Shown here: piece after piece, positions 489-11,819 of the stretch
Layout of the letters: every line of letters begins with the position of its first letter
Numbering within the stretch: position 1 is the stretch's first letter
Assembly: GCA_001600695.1 (NCBI GenBank)
Contig: BCKQ01000050.1
Location: 1-11,819 of the forward strand
DNA length: 11,819 nt
Reading direction: 5' to 3'
Origin: Ascoidea asiatica JCM 7603
Taxonomy: Eukaryota; Fungi; Ascomycota
Position numbers and translations under genes: made by a program
Notes under the pieces: model-generated
The model's input: only the letters and a program-made list of their open reading frames with translations
The model's database searches: none
What the model was told of the DNA's origin: nothing

Positions 489-1449
489 ATCGTTTCAAAA
501 TTATCGAATTTGGTTGAATGAATATTATACAAGCTCTCTTCAAAGAGCCAATTAAACGTTATTACACAAAAATTAGAATAATGTTGTTTTTAATAATATA
601 TGAGTTCTTCAACGCTACTTGCGCAACGTTCTGAATTTTTAATCATGATAACTGAGATTGTCATATTTTTAGTGGCTTGCCAAAATTTTTAGGGACTCTA
701 GTTAATCTTTCTTATTGTTATAGATTTATTTTAACTCGATTCAGGTTGATCGTATTTTTGTTGGCGGTAGAAGTAGCTCAGGTAAGGAATTTTTACTACA
801 ATAGTTTGAGCGTAAAGCCACTCTATTTTTATATTTATACTCTCTAAGTGTAAATAACATACTAATTTTAACAACTATCAACATCTGAATAAATAACACT
901 AGCAAATTGTATGTATACATAAAGTAACCAGATCTATATGTAAAATAAAAACTTCTTTACAGTTTTTTAAATAATTTTATTGAATTTTTATAGAAAAAGA
1001 GGATAAATAGACTGAAAAGCCTACATAATCTTTAAGTGGGATAGGTAACCATCAAGAAAAAATATCTTAGAAAATATTTCTAAAACAATAAAAAAAAGTT
1101 AGAAATCATGTTTTCTACACCCTAAATTATCTAGTTAGTGTCTTTTTGTTTTAGTTAGAAGAGTATGCTAAATTTATCATCTTTCAAGTTAATAACGTAA
1201 AAATTTATTATGTTACTTGATTTGCAAGTTATTACACCCATATAAGTTTATATAACATGTGTAGGGTATATTATGCTACATTTCGAAATTATTTAAGCAG
1301 ATTAATTTTAGTCAAAGCTTTTTCTGACAAAAATGAGTAATTCATCCAAACTTAGTAATTTTAAAATTAATTCACAGACATATATCAGGCATGTTTTTTT
1401 TTGAAGCAATCACGATAGCTTTTATAGCGCACTATTTCCAGTTCATATA

Positions 1450-4400
1450 TTATCTTCCAAAGTTAGGTAAGCGTAATCTACTTTTTGTTTTTACTCTAGA
1501 GCCAGTAAAAGGGTCTTCTTTGTTTATGGTCGTCAGCTTAGTCAAAGAAACATTTCCAAACTGAAAGCTAAGATCATCCAAATCAGTTTTCGATTTTTCA
1601 GGATATTGAATTGAAGTATTCCCAATTCCTAGAGCTCTGTTAATTTTCTCTTGCCAAAATTTTTTAGCTTCATCTAATAGTTCTAAGTTATTGGAAACCT
1701 GTGAGCCTGTTGAGGCTCCATTCAAAAGTAGTAGTTCAGCGATCTCAAAAACCGGCTCTTCCCTAGAATCGGAAAAATGTGTGAGTGCATACTCTAAAAG
1801 ACTTGATTCTATTTCCTTTTCCTTTCCTTTTATGACTAGCATATTAGGATTTGCATTACTAGACAAAGCTCTAAGAATCATATGAACATTATTTGAATGA
1901 ATACCATAGATTAAATGATTGTTGGCTTTGATATCATGCTCAACATATAAACGTTTTTTATATTTGTTAGTAATAAATGAACTACGTTCTGAAGCTGACG
2001 AGTTAAAGGAGATTAGGGACTGCTTATCTCTCAAATTTGCTTCCCAATAAGAGTTCACTGTCGAATTCGACACTGAGTGAAGAAGCTTAACCATCTCTTT
2101 TGTAAATATTGATACGTCTAAAGTTAAAGATCGAATTTTCGAAATATGAGAGCCTAAGCTTCTATGAATCCCAGAACAATCTATGCAAACAACAAGTAGA
2201 AGATTGATTGATAGCCATTCAACTGATTTTGTCGATCCACAATCACAGCAGTTGTAATTACTTTTATCAATGTTGCGAACCAATGCGAAATAATTGGTTG
2301 TAGGCACACTGGGCAAACTCTTTGAGGGTATAACACTTTCATCTTGTAGCTTCTTTGGCAGCTCTAAGCTGGTAGAACCCGCTGGAAATTTTTCATAAGT
2401 ATTTCTACTAATTTCATTTCCATTCATCCCCATAGAATTAGTCGTACTTGCTTTGACAGCATTGTTTAAACTATCAATCCAAGACATTCTATCTTGTTCA
2501 CTTGATGCTTGAAATAATCTTCTCAAATTTGTATTTGTCACTACCTCAAAACAAAATCTTCTATCATTGTGGGTTTCAAGGTATCTAATGCAGGCTAATT
2601 TTAATTCAATGGGCTGCCCTCTTAAAACCTTCCCTGTTTTCCAATCAGCGTACTCTTTCAAAGTTGTACCTTCTAAAACCATCCAGTGCTTATGCCAGCC
2701 AGTTTTTGCTTGTCCACCATAACTCCATAATATCCCCTGTTTATCCACCAAAGAATTTCGTTTTGAAGAGTTACTTTCCTTTAGAAAATCCAAAGCACTT
2801 GCAATTTCTTGAAAACTCTGCGCGTTAACAATATTTGTTCTCTTGATATACTGCTGATTTTTTATATTCGACCAAGTTTCCACCAAATCCTGACAATAGT
2901 GAATATGCTCAATGCAAACACTAATTGAAGAATTTAGTTGATCTCCTTTTTGTTGAGTGATATCTGGTTTACCAAAACTATAGCTGTTGTTTAAAGCTTT
3001 TCGAGTAAAGTAACAAACATTCAACAAAAATTTTCTAAAAAACTCACCATTTTTGATTTCATTCAAATAGTTGAAGTAATCATATCTCACTAACTCAAAT
3101 TTTTTTTTTTTGCTGAGCAACTTTTCGTCACGTTTAGATAATGCCCCTGAAACGTTCATGAGTATGTCTTTATCATCCTCTATTCTGAGCAGTTTGGTAT
3201 TAGTAGCATCTGGAGTAGTACTTGAAATTCTCATGAGAGAATCTTTTCCTACATATCGCGAGGTAATTGAACTGCCATCTTTTGAGAGATATTTACTTGC
3301 AGAGGAGTAATAGTCTTTACTACTATCAAAATACTGCTTTTTCCGAATAGCAAGGTTTTTGAAATCGCTATTGTAATATAACGATCTTAAAGGTGATAGA
3401 AAAAATTTCTTCAATAATGTTATTTCATCTAAATCTTCTTGCATGTTATGCTTTTCAATAGTTATTAGGTTCAAGATAATATCCTCAGCTTTCTGTTTAA
3501 ATTCATATCCATCAAAAAAAGTTACAAATTCTTTTAGATCTGTTACAAACTCATTTTTACAGGATAAAGAATCAGAGATGGAGCTTTCAAGATTTTCAAG
3601 TTTCTTAAGTAATAACTTGACTCTAGGCTTTAAATTCATTGCAAAATCCTCAAGGTCATTGACTGCCTTTCTATAAAAGGGACCATCAACTGAAGGTAGA
3701 TAGTCTGTTTCTGGCTCTTTTATACTCGAAGAAAGACCATCATCGGAGGCTTTAATGTTAGCCTGTGCTGCGAGAGACTGTTTTGGACTAGTAACTTCTA
3801 GCAAACTATTATTCTCCTTGAAATCTGTAGGAGAATTGTTTTCATATTTTTGAACCAAATTTTTTAGCTCAGATTGAGACTCATGTGTTTGAAGTATACT
3901 GTCATCTTTGAAAAATCTTTCTGGCTCACACCAAATACCAAAATATACTAGAGGTTTGAATATATCGTCTGTTTTATCCTGATGGAAAATATAATATATA
4001 TAGGCACCTTCTGATGAATTTGGAAGATTGTATAAAAATGAAAATTTAAGGGTGGTAGAAGAATTATTACTAGACTCATTTCGTTTCTCAACTACCGGAA
4101 CATTATTAAGGGATGCTGCAATATTATCTCTCTGAACATCCCCTATAATAACAACATTATTATCATCATCATAAATTCCTTCAGATATCTGCAGGATTTC
4201 CTTTAATTTTTCAAAAATTTCATCTTTTGATCTTCCCCTAATTAAACAAAGGTTTTTGAAAACAGGAATAGAATCTTCCAACGACTTTACAGAAGACAGC
4301 CTTTTGAGAGAATCGTAGTCGTTAGGTTCATTTTGGGAAACCCCCGTTGTGGAATCCTCAACTGATAAACTGGGATCTTTAAAATCTTTGCAAGTATTTT

Positions 4401-4884
4401 TCAGAGAACTAAAATCTACAGTAGAAGATGTTTGCAGTTTCTTAGTTTCTTCAGTGATACTTTGTTCCAAATTTTCAACGAAATTGAAATCTTCTACCAG
4501 TATAGGGGAAGCAGCTAGTGTGGCATCAAGCTCTGCATACTGGGGTTGTGTTTCAAAAACAAAAATTATTTGAGAATGTGAATGAATGTCTAAAAGAAAA
4601 GGATATGAAATTTCTGGAAAATGACAGTTTTGAACAAATTTACATGGCGTATTTTGATGCTCCACTCCTTTTTGGCTATAACCTTGGATTCCAATCAGAG
4701 TGTCATTGTTTGCAATCTTTATCAAAGAAGGATAATTTGGAGCAGTTTGAGTATCATTCCATTGTGATCCTTTACCACCAGAGCGAATGATTATGTTTCT
4801 AATATTAAACTTATTTATATTAGAAAATACTAGTGGTTGACCAAAAGAAATTGAATTCTTTTCTTTACTTGTTACTTGTCCCAT
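1450..4884 (-). CDS. AGE1: ADP-ribosylation factor GTPase-activating protein, ACAP/centaurin-beta-like architecture (BAR-PH-ArfGAP-ankyrin), Age1 family, 1144 aa
   Basis: ArfGAP zinc finger with catalytic Arg: CCDCGSTKSVEWLSINLLLVVCIDCSGIHRSLGSHISKIRSLTLD (C-x2-C-x17-C-x2-C-x4-R; as I recall, the x17 spacing and sequence match yeast Age1). PH domain: KQGILW...WHKHWMVL...RRFCFEVVT...FQASSEQDRMSWI. BAR-like start DGPFYRKAVNDLE followed by long helices. Ankyrin-like segments: ILRALSSNANPN and IAELLLLNGA. N-terminus MGQVTS fits the myristoylation consensus. Confidence 0.9.
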   Translation of the reverse strand: MGQVTSKEKNSISFGQPLVFSNINKFNIRNIIIRSGGKGSQWNDTQTAPNYPSLIKIANNDTLIGIQGYSQKGVEHQNTPCKFVQNCHFPEISYPFLLDIHSHSQIIFVFETQPQYAELDATLAASPILVEDFNFVENLEQSITEETKKLQTSSTVDFSSLKNTCKDFKDPSLSVEDSTTGVSQNEPNDYDSLKRLSSVKSLEDSIPVFKNLCLIRGRSKDEIFEKLKEILQISEGIYDDDNNVVIIGDVQRDNIAASLNNVPVVEKRNESSNNSSTTLKFSFLYNLPNSSEGAYIYYIFHQDKTDDIFKPLVYFGIWCEPERFFKDDSILQTHESQSELKNLVQKYENNSPTDFKENNSLLEVTSPKQSLAAQANIKASDDGLSSSIKEPETDYLPSVDGPFYRKAVNDLEDFAMNLKPRVKLLLKKLENLESSISDSLSCKNEFVTDLKEFVTFFDGYEFKQKAEDIILNLITIEKHNMQEDLDEITLLKKFFLSPLRSLYYNSDFKNLAIRKKQYFDSSKDYYSSASKYLSKDGSSITSRYVGKDSLMRISSTTPDATNTKLLRIEDDKDILMNVSGALSKRDEKLLSKKKKFELVRYDYFNYLNEIKNGEFFRKFLLNVCYFTRKALNNSYSFGKPDITQQKGDQLNSSISVCIEHIHYCQDLVETWSNIKNQQYIKRTNIVNAQSFQEIASALDFLKESNSSKRNSLVDKQGILWSYGGQAKTGWHKHWMVLEGTTLKEYADWKTGKVLRGQPIELKLACIRYLETHNDRRFCFEVVTNTNLRRLFQASSEQDRMSWIDSLNNAVKASTTNSMGMNGNEISRNTYEKFPAGSTSLELPKKLQDESVIPSKSLPSVPTTNYFALVRNIDKSNYNCCDCGSTKSVEWLSINLLLVVCIDCSGIHRSLGSHISKIRSLTLDVSIFTKEMVKLLHSVSNSTVNSYWEANLRDKQSLISFNSSASERSSFITNKYKKRLYVEHDIKANNHLIYGIHSNNVHMILRALSSNANPNMLVIKGKEKEIESSLLEYALTHFSDSREEPVFEIAELLLLNGASTGSQVSNNLELLDEAKKFWQEKINRALGIGNTSIQYPEKSKTDLDDLSFQFGNVSLTKLTTINKEDPFTGSRVKTKSRLRLPNFGR

Positions 4885-5113
4885 GTTTTTTTAGAAAAGA
4901 TAGTTGATTTAAAAAAAGAAAAAATATATTCGAATTTATATCCATGTTGATAAAGAATTGCATTTACATATTTGTTCAATTGCGAGCTCATATGCCTTGC
5001 TTTTTTACTTTAATTCTTAAACAATAATAGTATCACTAAACACATGATTACGTTGCATTAACACAGACGAATGGCGATTGCAGATCTGTGGATCAAAATT
5101 TAATTCAAGCTAA

Positions 5114-5121
5114 ATCACGTG
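5114..5121 (+). promoter_or_regulatory. RTCACGTG bHLH (Cbf1/Tye7-type) E-box in the divergent AGE1/MATalpha1 promoter
   Basis: ATCACGTG 230 bp upstream of the AGE1 ATG, followed by a long poly(T) tract (about 5127-5138) typical of nucleosome-depleted yeast promoters. Confidence 0.4.
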
Positions 5122-5147
5122 GATTGTTTTTTTTTTTTATTTCTAGA

Positions 5148-5155
5148 TTACGTAA
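5148..5155. promoter_or_regulatory. Palindromic TTACGTAA, possible bZIP site
   Basis: Perfect 8-bp palindrome in the AGE1/alpha1 intergenic region, with a related GATTACGT near 5046. Motif match only. Confidence 0.25.
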
Positions 5156-5662
5156 CATACTCATCACACTTACTTTTTTTGCTAAGCATATTTGCAGTGA
5201 ATAGTATTAAACCAGAATAAATGCTTTTATCCTAAAAATGCAGGAATAAGTTTGCAGGTAAAAATTTTTAACGGGAAAATCATCAATCAATCTCTGTTTT
5301 ACTAATAATTTCCCTTTACAAAATCAACTATTTAAAATTCTAGGACTTTTAGCAAAACATTTGCTTCACGTTTACCCTTACAAACGGGATATATTTCACT
5401 GACAGTATTAATAGATAAGCACTTTTCAAAATTCTGCTTTGGGGCTGAAATTACTTAGAACCCAAATGCTACAATTACTACACTGTAGAGTCTGATGGCT
5501 TTCGGTTTTATAACTATTAGTATAAGTATAAATCTCAAGAATTTGATTACTGAAGTATTAGAAGTTCTTTTGTACGTATTTTTCTTTATCCTTTATATTT
5601 TTGTTTTTTAGAAATAAAAAAGACCAGTTCCAGATATAGCTTTTTTTATTATTTCAAGCAGG

Positions 5663-6424
5663 ATGTCCAAAGGTTTACACCCAGTTATAAACAAGAAACC
5701 CGCATTTATCATAAAGAATTATAAGATTGCAAAGGCGCCTAAAAGGAAGGTTGAAAGCAAAAGAAAATCCGAGTTGAAGAATACCACCAATGTATTTCAA
5801 TCTGGTCTTGCGCCAACAATACCTTCACCTTCTTTAGAGTTGTCTACTATGTTGGCAAGTGTTAAAAAAGAAGAGCTTACCGAAAATCTAAAAATCAATG
5901 AAGAAAAAAAATTAACAAAGTCTATCAAAAAAATTCCTAAAAAGAGAAGATTAAATGGATTTATGGCCTTTAGATCATATTATTCTAAAAGGATATGTAG
6001 CGCCTCCCTTCAAAGAAGGCTATCGTCAAGCTTAAGCAAATTTTGGGAAAAAGAAAAGAATCAATCCTCATGGCAAAAATTGGCAATAATATACAACTCA
6101 GAAGTACGTGATATTTCTTTTAATGATTGGTTAAGTTCCATGAATGAAGACATCAATACTTCTGCCAATAGTGGCGATGAAAGGAAAAAAAATGGTACTA
6201 TAGAAGATATTTTTGATGAAGAGAGTTGTTTTAGCCAGGATTTTACTTTACCTTCTATAGATTTGCAAAATCAATTTCTTTCCAGTTTTCAAATTGATAA
6301 TTGTGATAATACTTTTCTTTCGAATGCTGGTTTTGATTCTTTCAACTTCTTAGTAGATTTAGAGACTCAAGATCCTTTTTTAAGCTCACTTCTAAATTTT
6401 AACACTTCTACATCAGGACTTTAA
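5663..6424 (+). CDS. MATalpha1: Mating-type alpha1 protein (alpha-box/HMG-related activator), 253 aa
   Basis: Alpha-box core KKRRLNGFMAFRSYYSKR...QRRLSSSLSKFWEKEKNQSSWQKLAIIYN. N-terminal KPAFIIKN resembles S. cerevisiae alpha1 KPAFKIKN. Acidic/Phe-rich C-terminal tail. No intron is needed. Adjacent to an alpha2 homeobox gene. Confidence 0.95.
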   Translation: MSKGLHPVINKKPAFIIKNYKIAKAPKRKVESKRKSELKNTTNVFQSGLAPTIPSPSLELSTMLASVKKEELTENLKINEEKKLTKSIKKIPKKRRLNGFMAFRSYYSKRICSASLQRRLSSSLSKFWEKEKNQSSWQKLAIIYNSEVRDISFNDWLSSMNEDINTSANSGDERKKNGTIEDIFDEESCFSQDFTLPSIDLQNQFLSSFQIDNCDNTFLSNAGFDSFNFLVDLETQDPFLSSLLNFNTSTSGL

Positions 6425-6754
6425 TTACTATTGGTATTATTTTACTATAAATAGAGTTCATATCAGCTATTTAATTTTTCAACATATAATGAATTTTCTA
6501 AACTTTTTTTTCTTCAAAATTTTTCTTATTTCTTTCTTAATTAATGGACACTTAATTGTTAATTTTACTTCTCAAGGACACTTTAATATATATTTAATAT
6601 AAAAAAACCTGTATACTCAAAATGACATTTATATTTTAATTTTTAGTTGTAAATATTAAGTGAAACTCTTTATATTGCTAGTTCGAGAAAGCAAAGATAC
6701 AGCATAATCTAATCGGTTATAATAAGCAGCATAAGTTTTCAGATAAATAAAAAC

Positions 6755-7815
6755 TTATTTTTCCAAGATACTACGAACGACATCACTGACTTCCGGATTT
6801 CGGTCCTTGCGTCTTAAAAATGTTAATACTTGAACAAAAAATAATAAACCAAAAAATTTATTTTTTAGTAACATACCTTCTGTTACAAAGCCTGATAAAT
6901 AGAATGTTAGAAATGGGTCGTTTAGTTATAATGGTCTAAGCACTGCTGATAATAACAATAATAATAAAAATAATAAAAATAACAAAATTCATATAAATAA
7001 TGGATATAATAAAATTTATAAGTTATAAAAACATTAAAAATAATACAAAAACAAAAAATTGATGACTTACCAATAACGAATTTGTTTTTCGGATAATTTT
7101 GTTCTTTTGATGAGTGAACCTATATCATTCCCAACATAACTATTAGGTAAATGATCCTGATACCTTCATAAAAATGTTAGTAAAAAAGTTTATCAACTAA
7201 AAAAAACTGATGCATACTTACCAAGATTCTAATATTTGATTGCTTTCTTTAGAATGACGTTGAACCTTTGAAGATTTAAGAATTGGCCCGGACTTTGGAG
7301 TTATAATTTCTTTAAATGTTATTTGACTTTTTTCTGGTTGTTTTACTTTAAAAGTGTTAACACCTTCAAGTTGTGCTCTAGAGACTATTGCAGATGATAA
7401 ATTGTTTGAAACCATATTGATGTTACCCAAAATTTTAATTATATCTGAGTGAGTGAGCATTTGTTTATTTTTATCATTTGAAATCAAATTTTTAAGCATC
7501 TGTATTTGTTAGTTATAAAAGTATCAAAAAGCATTTTTAACAATCAACACACTGAAGTTACATACTTTATTTGCAGAACTCGCTTCTTTTGCAACCATAG
7601 CAAAGTCAAATTCATCTGCTGAACAAACGTATCCTAAGCATCTTCCTAATGTATAATATAGTTCTGAAAGCCTTGAAGAACAGGTTAGAACAAAAATCCT
7701 TTTATTTTATAAATTAAATCATAGTTAAATTTGAAACATACTCTTTTTTGAATTCCTTTTTCTTTGGATCTTCAACTGGTTGTTGATTCTGGGAAATCAA
7801 ATTTGAAATATTCAT
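6755..7815 (-). CDS. MATalpha2: Mating-type alpha2 homeodomain repressor, spliced: complement(join(6755..6812,6877..6891,7071..7163,7222..7499,7566..7671,7742..7815)), 624 nt, 207 aa
   Basis: Spliced translation: MNISNLISQNQQPVEDPKKKEFKKELSELYYTLGRCLGYVCSADEFDFAMVAKEASSANKMLKNL...QITFKEIITPKSGPILKSSKVQRHSKESNQILESWYQDHLPNSYVGNDIGSLIKRTKLSEKQIRYWLCNRRRKDRNPEVSDVVRSILEK*. The homeodomain aligns with S. cerevisiae alpha2 (ILESWF..NPY..LSRIQIKNWVSNRRRK). N-terminal ISNLI resembles IKDLL, and a C-terminal amphipathic tail is present. All five introns have GTATGT or GTAAGT donors and CTAAC/TTAAC branch points, and all phases are consistent. Confidence 0.92.
6813..6876 (-). other. MATalpha2 intron 5 (64 nt, phase 2, weak TATTAAC branch point, AAG acceptor)
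   Basis: GTATGT...TATTAAC-ATTTTTAAG. Restores NR-R-RKDRNPEVSDVVRSILEK, matching the alpha2 NRRRK motif plus tail. Confidence 0.8.
6892..7070 (-). other. MATalpha2 intron 4 (179 nt, phase 2 within the Trp48 codon, CAG acceptor)
   Basis: GTAAGT...TTCTAAC-ATTCTATTTATCAG. Restores QIRY-W-LCNR. Confidence 0.88.
6949..6987. repeat. Imperfect (AAT/AAC/AAA)n low-complexity tract inside alpha2 intron 4
   Basis: ATAATAACAATAATAATAAAAATAATAAAAATAACAAAA. It accounts for part of the extra length of intron 4. Confidence 0.6.
7164..7221 (-). other. MATalpha2 intron 3 (58 nt, phase 2 within the helix-1 Trp codon, AAG acceptor)
   Basis: GTAAGT...TACTAAC-ATTTTTATGAAG. Restores ILES-W-YQDH. The CAG 7 nt downstream is out of frame and leads to TAG. 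Confidence 0.88.
7500..7565 (-). other. MATalpha2 intron 2 (66 nt, phase 0, CAG acceptor)
   Basis: GTATGT...AACTAAC-AAATACAG, joining ...SSANK to MLKNL... in frame. Contains an in-frame TGA if retained. Confidence 0.85.
7672..7741 (-). other. MATalpha2 intron 1 (70 nt, phase 2, AAG acceptor)
   Basis: GTATGT...TTCTAAC-CTGTTCTTCAAG. Using the next CAG (ending 7664) shifts frame into a TGA. Confidence 0.8.
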
Positions 7816-7961
7816 CTTCTTTTTTTATACCTAAAGTCGTTAAATATCAAAGCAATCTTATTCAAGAATAAAGCCAATTCTAAGTATATTTATAAGCATA
7901 ACTTTTTTGATTAACAAGATGATAAGGAAAAAAAGATAATTTTGAGAGTTTAACAATTCTT

Positions 7962-7971
7962 GTCACGTGAT
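7962..7971. promoter_or_regulatory. Palindromic RTCACGTGAY (Cbf1/Tye7-type) site upstream of MATalpha2
   Basis: GTCACGTGAT about 150 bp upstream of the alpha2 ATG (7815). A TATAAATA lies on the minus strand at 7894-7887, between the site and the ATG. Confidence 0.5.
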
Positions 7972-8062
7972 AATAAAATAATACCATCAACAAATCTCTG
8001 CTCTTCAACCCTACCGACTTAACTAACTACTATTTTTTTTAAAATATTCAAGCAAGCCAGAT

Positions 8063-8100
8063 TGTTTCACTTGATTACAATTCACAGAATGAATGTTTCA
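8063..8100 (-). promoter_or_regulatory. Two tandem Ste12 pheromone-response-element matches (TGAAACA) upstream of MATalpha2
   Basis: TGTTTCA on + at 8063-8069 and 8094-8100, same orientation, 31 bp apart. This is an AT-rich 7-mer, so chance matches are possible. Confidence 0.3.
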
Positions 8101-8944
8101 AATCATAGGATGGTAACATCAAAATAAAACGCTAAGAATAAATCAAATTTTTTTATCTTACTAATTAATAAATATTTATAGATCAATTCAAAGCAAACGA
8201 ATATAGCTTAGGTTATATGAGTATAATATCTTCTTTGTCCTCTATAACTGCTTTTACCAAAAAAAAGGCTTCTGAAGAAGGCTTGCTCAAATGGAATATT
8301 TGGTTCACCCATGTTTTATTTTTCAAAATGTATCAAATAAACTACCAGATATTTAAAGATTTTGTAATGTTCCAAGAAAAAAGTGAAAAAATGTTTGAAT
8401 GAACTCATGAATATTTCAAAGTATAAGTCTATTACCTTGTTTAAATTCTGCTTAGCATTATTTTACTTACATAAGGTAAACTTTCGAAAATTCAACGGAT
8501 TATATTTATATCCTATACAAGACAAAAGACCAAGAAATTGATAAGCTATACTCTGTAAATCATTGAAGTTGAAATTTTAAAACTTAAAAACAAATCACTC
8601 AAAAAATTGAAAATCGCTTAAATTCCAAACTTTATTTATAGTGATAGCGCATTAGAATTTTGAAGCATTTTCATTTTTTTGGAGATAGCTTTATTTTGTC
8701 TCTCAAAACTTCAAACTAATAGATTTTTTTCATTCAATCACTTGAACCCAAACTCAGCCTTACCATTTAAGCAAATTATATTTAGTATAGGTTCACTTAT
8801 TAAATGACATTCTGTGGAAATTAGCGTAAATTAAACCAGTTAGCCAAATCCTCATTAACTTGTTTATTTCCCAAAGCATTATAGAACCATGAGGAAACTT
8901 ACAACCAGCAATCTATCTAATAATAAGGCTTTCAACTATAAAAA

Positions 8945-11137
8945 TCAAATACCTTCTAATTCTTCTTGTTTGATGGAGTTAGATAGTTCTACCAAAGGAG
9001 ATAGTGATTCACAAGCATCTGCCTGTAAAATAAATGGATCCTTCAAAGCTTCCTCTGCTGAAAGCCTCTGATCAACATCCACTTCTAAAATTTGGTCTAA
9101 AAAATGTTGTAAAACAATTGAAATTTTGGTGTCAGACTTTAATTTAGGGGTACCAACCGTTGCAATTAAATAGAGAGCACGTAAAGGTGCTTCGTTCAAA
9201 TAAGGAGGCTCCCCCTCAATCATCTCAATAGTCATTATCCCCAAAGACCAAATATCAACTTTGGGTCCATACTCTTTCATGGTAACAACTTCAGGAGACA
9301 TCCAATAAGGAGTACCAACTAATGTATTTCTTTTCTGCTTCAATTCATTTATTTGTGCACAAAATCCGAAATCAGTTAATTTTATTTTTCCTTCTAAAGA
9401 TAATAAAATATTATCTGATTTTATATCCCGATGTATAACCCCGTTTCTATGTAGGAACAGCAATCCATTTAAAGTCTCTCTGCATATGGCTCCTATTTGA
9501 CCCTCGGATAAAAAACTTTGAGTAACAATATCCGTTAATGATCCCCCTTCCATATATTCCATAACAACCCAAAGAATGCCATTCTGTATATGTGAGTTAA
9601 TGAAATTAACTATGTTTCTGTGCTTCAAAGTTTTCATAACCAAAATCTCGTTGACAATTAGCTCCTTTTTTGGCTGTGCTTGAAGCCTCATTTTTTTGAT
9701 AGCAAGAAATTTTCCATCAGTAATTCGACGAGCTGTATAAACAAAGCCAGAAGCGCCTTGCCCGATTTTTTTTAGTTCCGAATAAGCAACTGAAGGATCT
9801 TCCGGCGAGCATATATTTTTAAGCTGAGAATATAAAGTCGTTAAGTCTTTTTCATTCTCTTCTTTTCTATTTATTACCTTTGAAACTTTTTGAGATGGAT
9901 CTTTTTCAAGGTTAGCTTTAGGATTAGTCTTAGGAAAACTTACTTTAGGCAGTTTATCTGAAATGTAGTTTTCTGGTTTTAGCTTACTAGCTGTACTAGA
10001 GCCTTCTTCTTCAACAAAATTTGTGGGAACGTCTTTCAGTATTGCATGCTTGTTGACAGTAAACGCATTACTATCAGAGCTTGTCAGGCTTGTTATTGGA
10101 GGTTTAGGCGCAGGCCTGCTAGGAAAAAATTGATCAGACTTCCTATTAACATCCATGAAAGTATTTGCATTCTTCAAATTCCTTGTTAATTTCAAGGAGC
10201 TATTCTTGAAATGAGAATTCGGGTTTTGGGCTCGAAGATTCAGAGTAAGGAGTACAGCATCTGAGGATTTAGTATGAGGGGCAAAACAATTTTCATTCCT
10301 CAAAATTTCGCCGCTTTGTCTTTTATCGAATCTGTAATTTTCTTGTTGAATTGCTAAAAATGATTCACTCTCCTCAGGCCGGTTGGAATATTGATAAAAT
10401 TTGACAATTTCTTTGATTTCTTTTGGATGAAGCAACTGTTCCTTCCTACTTATGCCACTTTTTGTTAAAACATTTTCCCACTCTATAGGTAGACCCGTAA
10501 GTTTTCCAGTTGCAGAATCAACTCCTACATGTGCTACATGTTCATATTTAAAGGGCCTTGATATTTCTCTAATGGATTCATTTGAGTAAGGATCGGAAGA
10601 GCTTGACATAAGTGATCCCCTATTAAAGTTTTTGAATGGCTGTTTGTAATTTTTGGATCCAGGATGAGATCTTGATCTCTGACCTTTGGCTTGAGAATCT
10701 GAAAATATATCTTCTTTTGCCGAATGAGCACTCTGATTAGAAAAGTTCTTTTTGAGATATTTAGAAGATGTGTCTACCACATTTACATTAGCATTTAAAT
10801 TGTGCATTAATTTAGACCATGGATATTTAGCCTTGTTATTTATTAATTTATGATTGCCAACTTTATCATAATTGCATTCATCAAGAACTTTGAATACCAA
10901 TGGATTTGTTGAAAACACTAAGTTCGGTGATGAAATTATATGTCCACCAGAACTTTTAAAATTTTCAGTGTTAGCAGCCATGTGGGACCCATTTAAAGAA
11001 GAAATGGATGTACGATTGCGATTATTTTCAATCAGCAGTGACTGATTAGTAGACGTATTTATAATACAATCAGAGGATAAGGAAGAATTGGACAGTGACA
11101 ATGCTGCTTTAAAATGTATAGGGTCATCTAAGTTCAT
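8945..11137 (-). CDS. STE20: Ste20-type p21-activated (PAK) Ser/Thr kinase, 730 aa
   Basis: CRIB/PBD: ISRPFKYEHVAHVGVD...TGLPIEWENVL. Pro-rich RPAPKPP. Kinase motifs: IGQGASG, AIKKM, QPKKELIVNEILVMK, HRDIKSDNILL, DFGFCA, GTPYWMSPE. C-terminal G-beta(Ste4)-binding motif SLSPLV. No PH domain before the CRIB, so Ste20 rather than Cla4. Confidence 0.95.
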   Translation of the reverse strand: MNLDDPIHFKAALSLSNSSLSSDCIINTSTNQSLLIENNRNRTSISSLNGSHMAANTENFKSSGGHIISSPNLVFSTNPLVFKVLDECNYDKVGNHKLINNKAKYPWSKLMHNLNANVNVVDTSSKYLKKNFSNQSAHSAKEDIFSDSQAKGQRSRSHPGSKNYKQPFKNFNRGSLMSSSSDPYSNESIREISRPFKYEHVAHVGVDSATGKLTGLPIEWENVLTKSGISRKEQLLHPKEIKEIVKFYQYSNRPEESESFLAIQQENYRFDKRQSGEILRNENCFAPHTKSSDAVLLTLNLRAQNPNSHFKNSSLKLTRNLKNANTFMDVNRKSDQFFPSRPAPKPPITSLTSSDSNAFTVNKHAILKDVPTNFVEEEGSSTASKLKPENYISDKLPKVSFPKTNPKANLEKDPSQKVSKVINRKEENEKDLTTLYSQLKNICSPEDPSVAYSELKKIGQGASGFVYTARRITDGKFLAIKKMRLQAQPKKELIVNEILVMKTLKHRNIVNFINSHIQNGILWVVMEYMEGGSLTDIVTQSFLSEGQIGAICRETLNGLLFLHRNGVIHRDIKSDNILLSLEGKIKLTDFGFCAQINELKQKRNTLVGTPYWMSPEVVTMKEYGPKVDIWSLGIMTIEMIEGEPPYLNEAPLRALYLIATVGTPKLKSDTKISIVLQHFLDQILEVDVDQRLSAEEALKDPFILQADACESLSPLVELSNSIKQEELEGI

Positions 11138-11627: not shown

Positions 11628-11819
11628 ATGAATGATAATTTTAATAGTAAAAGTATAAAACTTGGTGAGGAAGAAGAATTTCTGGGTAACCAAATTATAT
11701 CAGATGATGAAATATCATGGATTTTAACAGAAATTTTTGATAAAAGAGATAATTATTTAAATTTAGATTCGAATAATTCTTTAAATGATAATAAACAAAA
11801 TTCTTTAAAAAATGATATT
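11628..11819 (+). CDS. 5' part of an unidentified gene running off the window (not in the ORF track)
   Basis: ATG at 11628, then 64 uninterrupted codons to the window edge: MNDNFNSKSIKLGEEEEFXGNQIISDDEISWILTEIFDKRDNYLNLDSNNSLNDNKQNSLKNDI (X=CTG). Asn/Asp-rich with strongly A/T-ending codons, preceded by a poly(T) tract. Confidence 0.5.
   Translation, partial: MNDNFNSKSIKLGEEEEFLGNQIISDDEISWILTEIFDKRDNYLNLDSNNSLNDNKQNSLKNDI

Follow-up and report, generated by a model that had tools for sequence, protein, structure and literature searches.

A probable alpha mating-type haplotype from the Ascoidea yeast lineage, in which AGE1 and STE20 adjoin MATalpha1 and a four-exon MATalpha2

Analysing an 11,819-nucleotide (nt) stretch of contig BCKQ01000050.1 from Ascoidea asiatica JCM 7603 over its whole length (hereafter the window), we recovered a mating-type (MAT) locus in which AGE1 (minus strand), MATalpha1 (plus strand), a spliced MATalpha2 (minus strand) and STE20 (minus strand) lie contiguously and in that order, as shown by the listing of open reading frames (ORFs) and by Pfam. 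An earlier note on this DNA had placed the four genes side by side, and all were found where it had put them, alpha2 by means of a splice model and the others from ORFs and Pfam matches. The same note had remarked that the usual MAT neighbours are unrecognisable here, which our inventory bears out: SLA2, DIC1, APN2 and the PAP/OBP/PIK genes were not among the window genes identified from ORFs and Pfam. Leaving alpha2 aside, the succession AGE1, alpha1, STE20 is that of the published alpha allele of A. asiatica (Krassowski et al. 2019, Curr Biol 29:2555, PMC6692504).

MATalpha1 (5663-6424, plus strand) encodes 253 residues and carries the alpha-box PF04769 (MATalpha_HMGbox) with an E-value of 2.5e-14 and 53.5 bits, against a gathering cut-off of 28.1. 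A word-based search with this protein found nothing, and homologues emerged only when 1.84 billion representative proteins were searched in full with HMMER, where the alpha-box protein ODV57904.1 of Ascoidea rubescens DSM 1968 stood at the top of 121 homologues. Alignment of the two by BLASTP gave 39% identity over 155 residues (E 3e-35).

MATalpha2 occupies 6755-7499 on the minus strand and is modelled as a gene of four exons, with 444 nt of coding sequence and a product of 147 residues related to homeodomain proteins of the three-amino-acid loop extension (TALE) type. In a plain view of ORFs exon 1 alone is visible, as a 93-residue ORF at 7218-7499 (minus strand); the alpha2 gene of the earlier note is real, but it is spliced. 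Exon 1 (7499-7222, 278 nt) ends with a TG/GTAAGT donor that splits the tryptophan codon of an ILESW motif, exon 2 (7163-7071, 93 nt) ends with another TG/GTAAGT donor, exon 3 is a microexon of 15 nt (6891-6877) followed by a GTATGT donor, and exon 4 (6812-6755, 58 nt) closes with a TAA stop codon at 6757-6755. The frame is open through all four exons, and the introns, of 58, 179 and 64 nt, have AG acceptors and TACTAAC-like branch sites, the first of them a TACTAAC box. A three-exon model, with a stop just past the microexon, was rejected when the A. rubescens gene revealed a third intron and its GTATGT donor. A further upstream exon in the window is possible.

The comparison gene was the A. 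rubescens gene at 681-1928 (minus strand) of locus L006, which adjoins alpha1 and is called MATalpha2 in the literature. Its second exon (987-895) and third exon (826-812) are, at 93 and 15 nt, of the same lengths as those of the window, and the two genes have in common both split tryptophan codons, the intron phases, the GTATGT donor of the microexon and the same tail over the 18 residues before the stop. The similarity of exon 2 was reached by none of 2000 shuffled sequences and that of the tail by 2 of 2000. Since exon sizes, intron phases and tail agree and the shuffles are significant for exon 2 and the tail, we regard the two genes as orthologous. The predicted third helix of the homeodomain, WLCNRRRKDR, spans the 15-nt microexon, and the ILESW tryptophan stands 31 residues from the one that precedes LCNRRRKDR, in the window as in A. 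rubescens. The equivalent spacing in Saccharomyces cerevisiae is 32 residues in alpha2 and 28 in a1. To judge by this spacing, the window protein has a homeodomain extended by three residues between helices 1 and 2 (TALE-like), as in S. cerevisiae alpha2 and not as in a1.

The two MAT genes are convergent in the window, with stop codons 330 bp apart, whereas in A. rubescens they are divergent, with starts about 860 bp apart (L006, 681-3451); either alpha1 or alpha2 has thus changed its orientation with respect to its partner after the separation of the two lineages. On the downstream side of A. rubescens alpha1, L006 holds 10 kb (3452-13451) without a called gene, in agreement with a report that the invertible MAT region of that species contains 44 kb of non-coding DNA.

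AGE1 (1450-4884, minus strand), presumably in its alpha version, encodes an AGE1-like BAR/PH/ArfGAP protein of 1144 residues. Its ArfGap (2.3e-31) domain and the PH domain that precedes it (4.3e-14) pass the Pfam cut-offs and a weak BAR_3 match stays below. Neither the zinc finger (CCDC, 17 residues, CIDC) nor the IHRSLG motif is disrupted; the name follows Krassowski et al. 2019 (PMC6692504). Within the ArfGAP domain, identity to Saccharomycopsis is 66-68%, the other best full-length relative, a Logan protein, reaches 36-41% identity, and the sole AGE1 of A. rubescens shares 32% identity over 1163 aligned positions. AGE1 is thereby no closer to its A. rubescens counterpart than the fast-evolving alpha1 is to its own (39%). 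In a quick maximum-likelihood tree, the window protein fell into a clade with A. rubescens and a Saccharomycopsis-like group, supported at 97% by the Shimodaira-Hasegawa-like approximate likelihood ratio test (SH-aLRT), and outside the Saccharomycopsis-like group itself (100%); the tree gave no firm placement relative to A. rubescens. For housekeeping genes of a single genus an identity of 32% would be unusually low, and it fits the published finding that the A. rubescens copy descends from the a version, AGE1a, with AGE1alpha outside (PMC6692504).

STE20 (8945-11137, minus strand), likewise presumably the alpha version, encodes a p21-activated kinase (PAK) of 730 residues with PBD/CRIB (4.2e-17) and Pkinase (2.7e-71) domains. 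No PH domain was found in it by Pfam, and the combination of a PBD with a C-terminal kinase domain and no PH domain marks it as of the Ste20 and not the Cla4 type; its best matches are proteins named STE20 or CST20. The catalytic motifs (GQGASG, HRD, DFG) are complete, and so is the CRIB core. Substitutions were seen in the conserved C-terminal tail of Ste20 (8945-9020, minus strand; residues ~708-722), which we take to be the motif that binds G-beta: the SLSPLV core is kept, and the next positions are E and S-N, where the residues of eight aligned yeasts, invariant or almost so, are K followed by A-R (in Debaryomyces, A-A). Judging from these residues, the coupling of this STE20 version to the pheromone G protein may differ.

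The non-mating-type genes adjoin the MAT genes closely on both sides. AGE1 and alpha1 are separated by 778 bp (4885-5662), which lie between divergent start codons, hold no ORF of note and are presumed to be the promoter region that the two genes share. Between the start codon of alpha2 and the stop codon of STE20 stretch 1445 bp (7500-8944) of AT-rich DNA (26-28% G+C), in which the ORF and Rfam scans found no gene and no RNA family, and whose short ORFs are without matches; this spacer is long for yeast intergenic DNA. The window as a whole is AT-rich too (30.5% G+C). No tRNA genes were found in it, its Rfam scan returned zero matches, and no long direct or inverted repeats, flip/flop inverted repeats included, were found within its limits. 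Two partial ORFs run off its edges, both on the plus strand: the 3' end of a gene at 1-354 (117 codons, stop at 352-354) and the 5' end of another at 11628-11819 (64 codons from an ATG at 11628). Neither has a credible Pfam match; the left one resembled none of the genes beside A. rubescens AGE1, and the right one showed no similarity to the ORF downstream of that gene. The left one may belong to one of the published flanking genes, ADR1 or MHP1.

The best match of alpha1, the exon structure of alpha2 and the clade of AGE1 all point to A. rubescens or Saccharomycopsis, and on these comparisons the window belongs to the Ascoidea lineage within the CUG-Ser2 clade. CTG codons are scarce, with nine in AGE1, none in alpha1 and eight in STE20. 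All eight of the STE20 codons fall in variable alignment columns, as would be expected in a clade with altered CUG decoding, but some of those in AGE1 fall at leucine columns.

For A. asiatica itself, AGE1 and STE20 have been reported as integrated into the Ya and Yalpha regions of a MAT locus that has ADR1 and MHP1 at its sides (PMC6692504). The alpha allele was given as AGE1alpha-MATalpha1-STE20alpha and the a allele as MATa2-AGE1a-STE20a-MATa1, a and alpha forms of the AGE1 and STE20 proteins being ~50% identical and differently oriented; no MATalpha2 was found in this species by the survey, and in A. rubescens STE20 has been lost and the remaining AGE1 groups with AGE1a (PMC6692504). In light of this, we consider it very probable that the window represents the MATalpha haplotype of a yeast from the Ascoidea lineage, in all likelihood A. 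asiatica, whose sex-determining region has been enlarged by STE20 and AGE1. The proposal of the earlier note, that both genes sit as alpha-specific alleles within an expanded idiomorph, is thereby supported, the published A. asiatica locus describing such an arrangement (PMC6692504) and the order and lineage of the window matching it. Gene content, order, intactness, lineage, alpha2 structure and the missing linkage in Saccharomycopsis were observed here, and the a versions and their divergence come from the literature. Allele-specificity would accordingly follow from PMC6692504 together with the identity of the window as A. asiatica or a very close relative, and gene order alone cannot show it, since two genes will flank a MAT locus in every case. 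The capture itself is already known, having been published in 2019 (PMC6692504), and the window brings no new principle; in the literature searched, no second paper joined Ascoidea and AGE1.

The linkage of AGE1, MAT and STE20 is derived, because it is absent in Saccharomycopsis crataegensis, where STE20 and AGE1 are on separate contigs (BTFZ01000011.1 and BTFZ01000020.1) and no MAT genes were found within 10 kb of either. Within 10 kb of A. rubescens AGE1, neither STE20 nor a MAT gene was found. Rearrangements would have brought two ordinary genes, STE20 and AGE1, among the MAT genes and trapped both there. The different order and orientation of the a haplotype would then block crossing-over, and under this putative suppression of recombination STE20 and AGE1 would evolve as sex-linked alleles and drift to ~50% protein identity. 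Each haploid would hold its own version only, so that both versions would have to stay functional, and the window agrees with such a dependence of every haploid on a single copy in that the ArfGAP zinc finger, the CRIB and the kinase motifs are all intact. Within such a haplotype, alpha1 would switch on alpha-specific genes and alpha2 would pair with a1 in the a/alpha diploid, for which the short conserved C-terminal tail of alpha2 is, by analogy with S. cerevisiae, a candidate a1-contact helix.

Several observations weigh against assigning the window to the published A. asiatica locus. No exact matches to the STE20, alpha1 and AGE1 proteins are on record, and the collections searched for an a haplotype yielded no STE20 or AGE1 relatives that combined ~50% identity with a MAT gene in the neighbourhood. 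Of the published flanks, neither ADR1 nor MHP1 was recognisable in the edge ORFs, as judged by Pfam and by the neighbourhood of A. rubescens AGE1. Finally, the window carries alpha2 although none was found in A. asiatica (PMC6692504), which would mean either that small exons were missed or that the DNA comes from another relative.

Four candidates for a-haplotype copies were considered in those collections and rejected. For STE20, P0003 proved to be a Saccharomycetaceae-like gene in ordinary synteny and P0113 a GC-rich, Cla4-like kinase of an unrelated organism; for AGE1, P0121 (L003) and P0123 (L004) clustered with the Saccharomycopsis-like sequences and lie in ordinary synteny, with neither MAT genes nor STE20 in their vicinity. 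The P0121 locus (Logan SRR23704380) and S. crataegensis (L009) both have MT-A70 and receptor-L-domain genes near AGE1, and P0121 probably comes from a Saccharomycopsis-like yeast.

The presence of alpha2 would be accounted for directly if the window came from another Ascoidea-lineage species with the same AGE1-MAT-STE20 arrangement, in which alpha2 had been kept and the capture would be older than A. asiatica. We regard this as unlikely, because exons of 93, 15 and 58 nt are easily missed by translated searches and because the remaining gene order is exactly that of the A. asiatica alpha allele (PMC6692504). The escape of such exons from translated searches is also our simple explanation for alpha2 having been overlooked in the survey.

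As for the alpha2-like gene itself, three features would suit a decaying relic, neither expressed nor spliced, at a locus functionally devoid of alpha2. Searches of Pfam and the PDB with the exons taken separately gave no homeodomain match; the similarity of exon 1 to A. rubescens was reached by 324 of 2000 shuffles and is not significant; and the product is, at 147 residues, far shorter than the 305 called in A. rubescens, the difference lying in the N-terminal part. The pieces searched, of 30 and 92 residues, are too short for profile matches, however, and the open four-exon frame with three canonical donors and AG acceptors, the exon lengths and phases shared with A. rubescens and the shuffle results for the homeodomain segment and the tail all speak for a maintained gene, so that a relic seems quite improbable. 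We think it likely that the A. asiatica type of alpha haplotype encodes a MATalpha2 of four exons, with a 15-nt microexon conserved in A. rubescens, contrary to its published absence. This gene is the only new detail of the window. Either the published gene list of the A. asiatica alpha allele has to be amended, or the window stems from a close relative in which alpha2 has been kept.

The least probable alternative, under which STE20 and AGE1 would be common neighbours that simply flank a small alpha idiomorph (~4885-8944) and would be near-identical in both mating types, is compatible with the window taken alone, but we hold it to be very improbable, since the two-allele analysis of PMC6692504 found the a and alpha versions to be divergent and differently oriented and since an AGE1 as distant from that of A. 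rubescens as alpha1 is from its counterpart would be unexpected for a plain housekeeping orthologue in a single genus.

If the alpha2 model is true, the species retains both partners, a1 and alpha2, with which the diploid state is sensed, and the a1-alpha2 circuit need not have been lost in it. In other surveys of yeast MAT loci, homeodomain genes may likewise have been overlooked by translated searches, and the model is in this respect a useful addition, an example of how tiny homeodomain exons can escape such searches. As a rare ascomycete parallel to the STE20 of Cryptococcus and to the PAP, OBP and PIK alleles of Candida albicans, the capture of STE20 and AGE1 by a budding-yeast MAT locus is relevant to the question of how such regions grow in sex determination.

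Among known systems, the published alpha allele of A. asiatica is the nearest, resembling the window in the order AGE1alpha/MATalpha1/STE20alpha, in lineage and in the lack of SLA2 and DIC1 neighbours; it differs in that no MATalpha2 was reported there, where the window has an intact four-exon gene between alpha1 and STE20. The MATalpha1-MATalpha2 pair of A. rubescens, at a telomere-proximal flip/flop locus (L006, KV454499.1), provides the closest known relative of alpha1 and the same four-exon structure of alpha2, and departs from the window in its divergent gene pair and its longer alpha2. The mating-type-like (MTL) locus of C. albicans likewise holds non-mating-type genes, present as diverged alleles of a and alpha type, among its MAT genes, a likeness that the authors of the A. 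asiatica study draw explicitly (PMC6692504), but the genes captured there, PAP, OBP and PIK, are others, were captured independently and are not in the window. In Cryptococcus neoformans and C. gattii, a mating-type-specific STE20 PAK (STE20a/STE20alpha) also lies inside the sex-determining region, which in these basidiomycetes exceeds 100 kb and comprises more than 20 genes, pheromones and receptors included, whereas the ascomycete locus described here has four genes in ~10 kb; the likeness in STE20 between the two is convergent.

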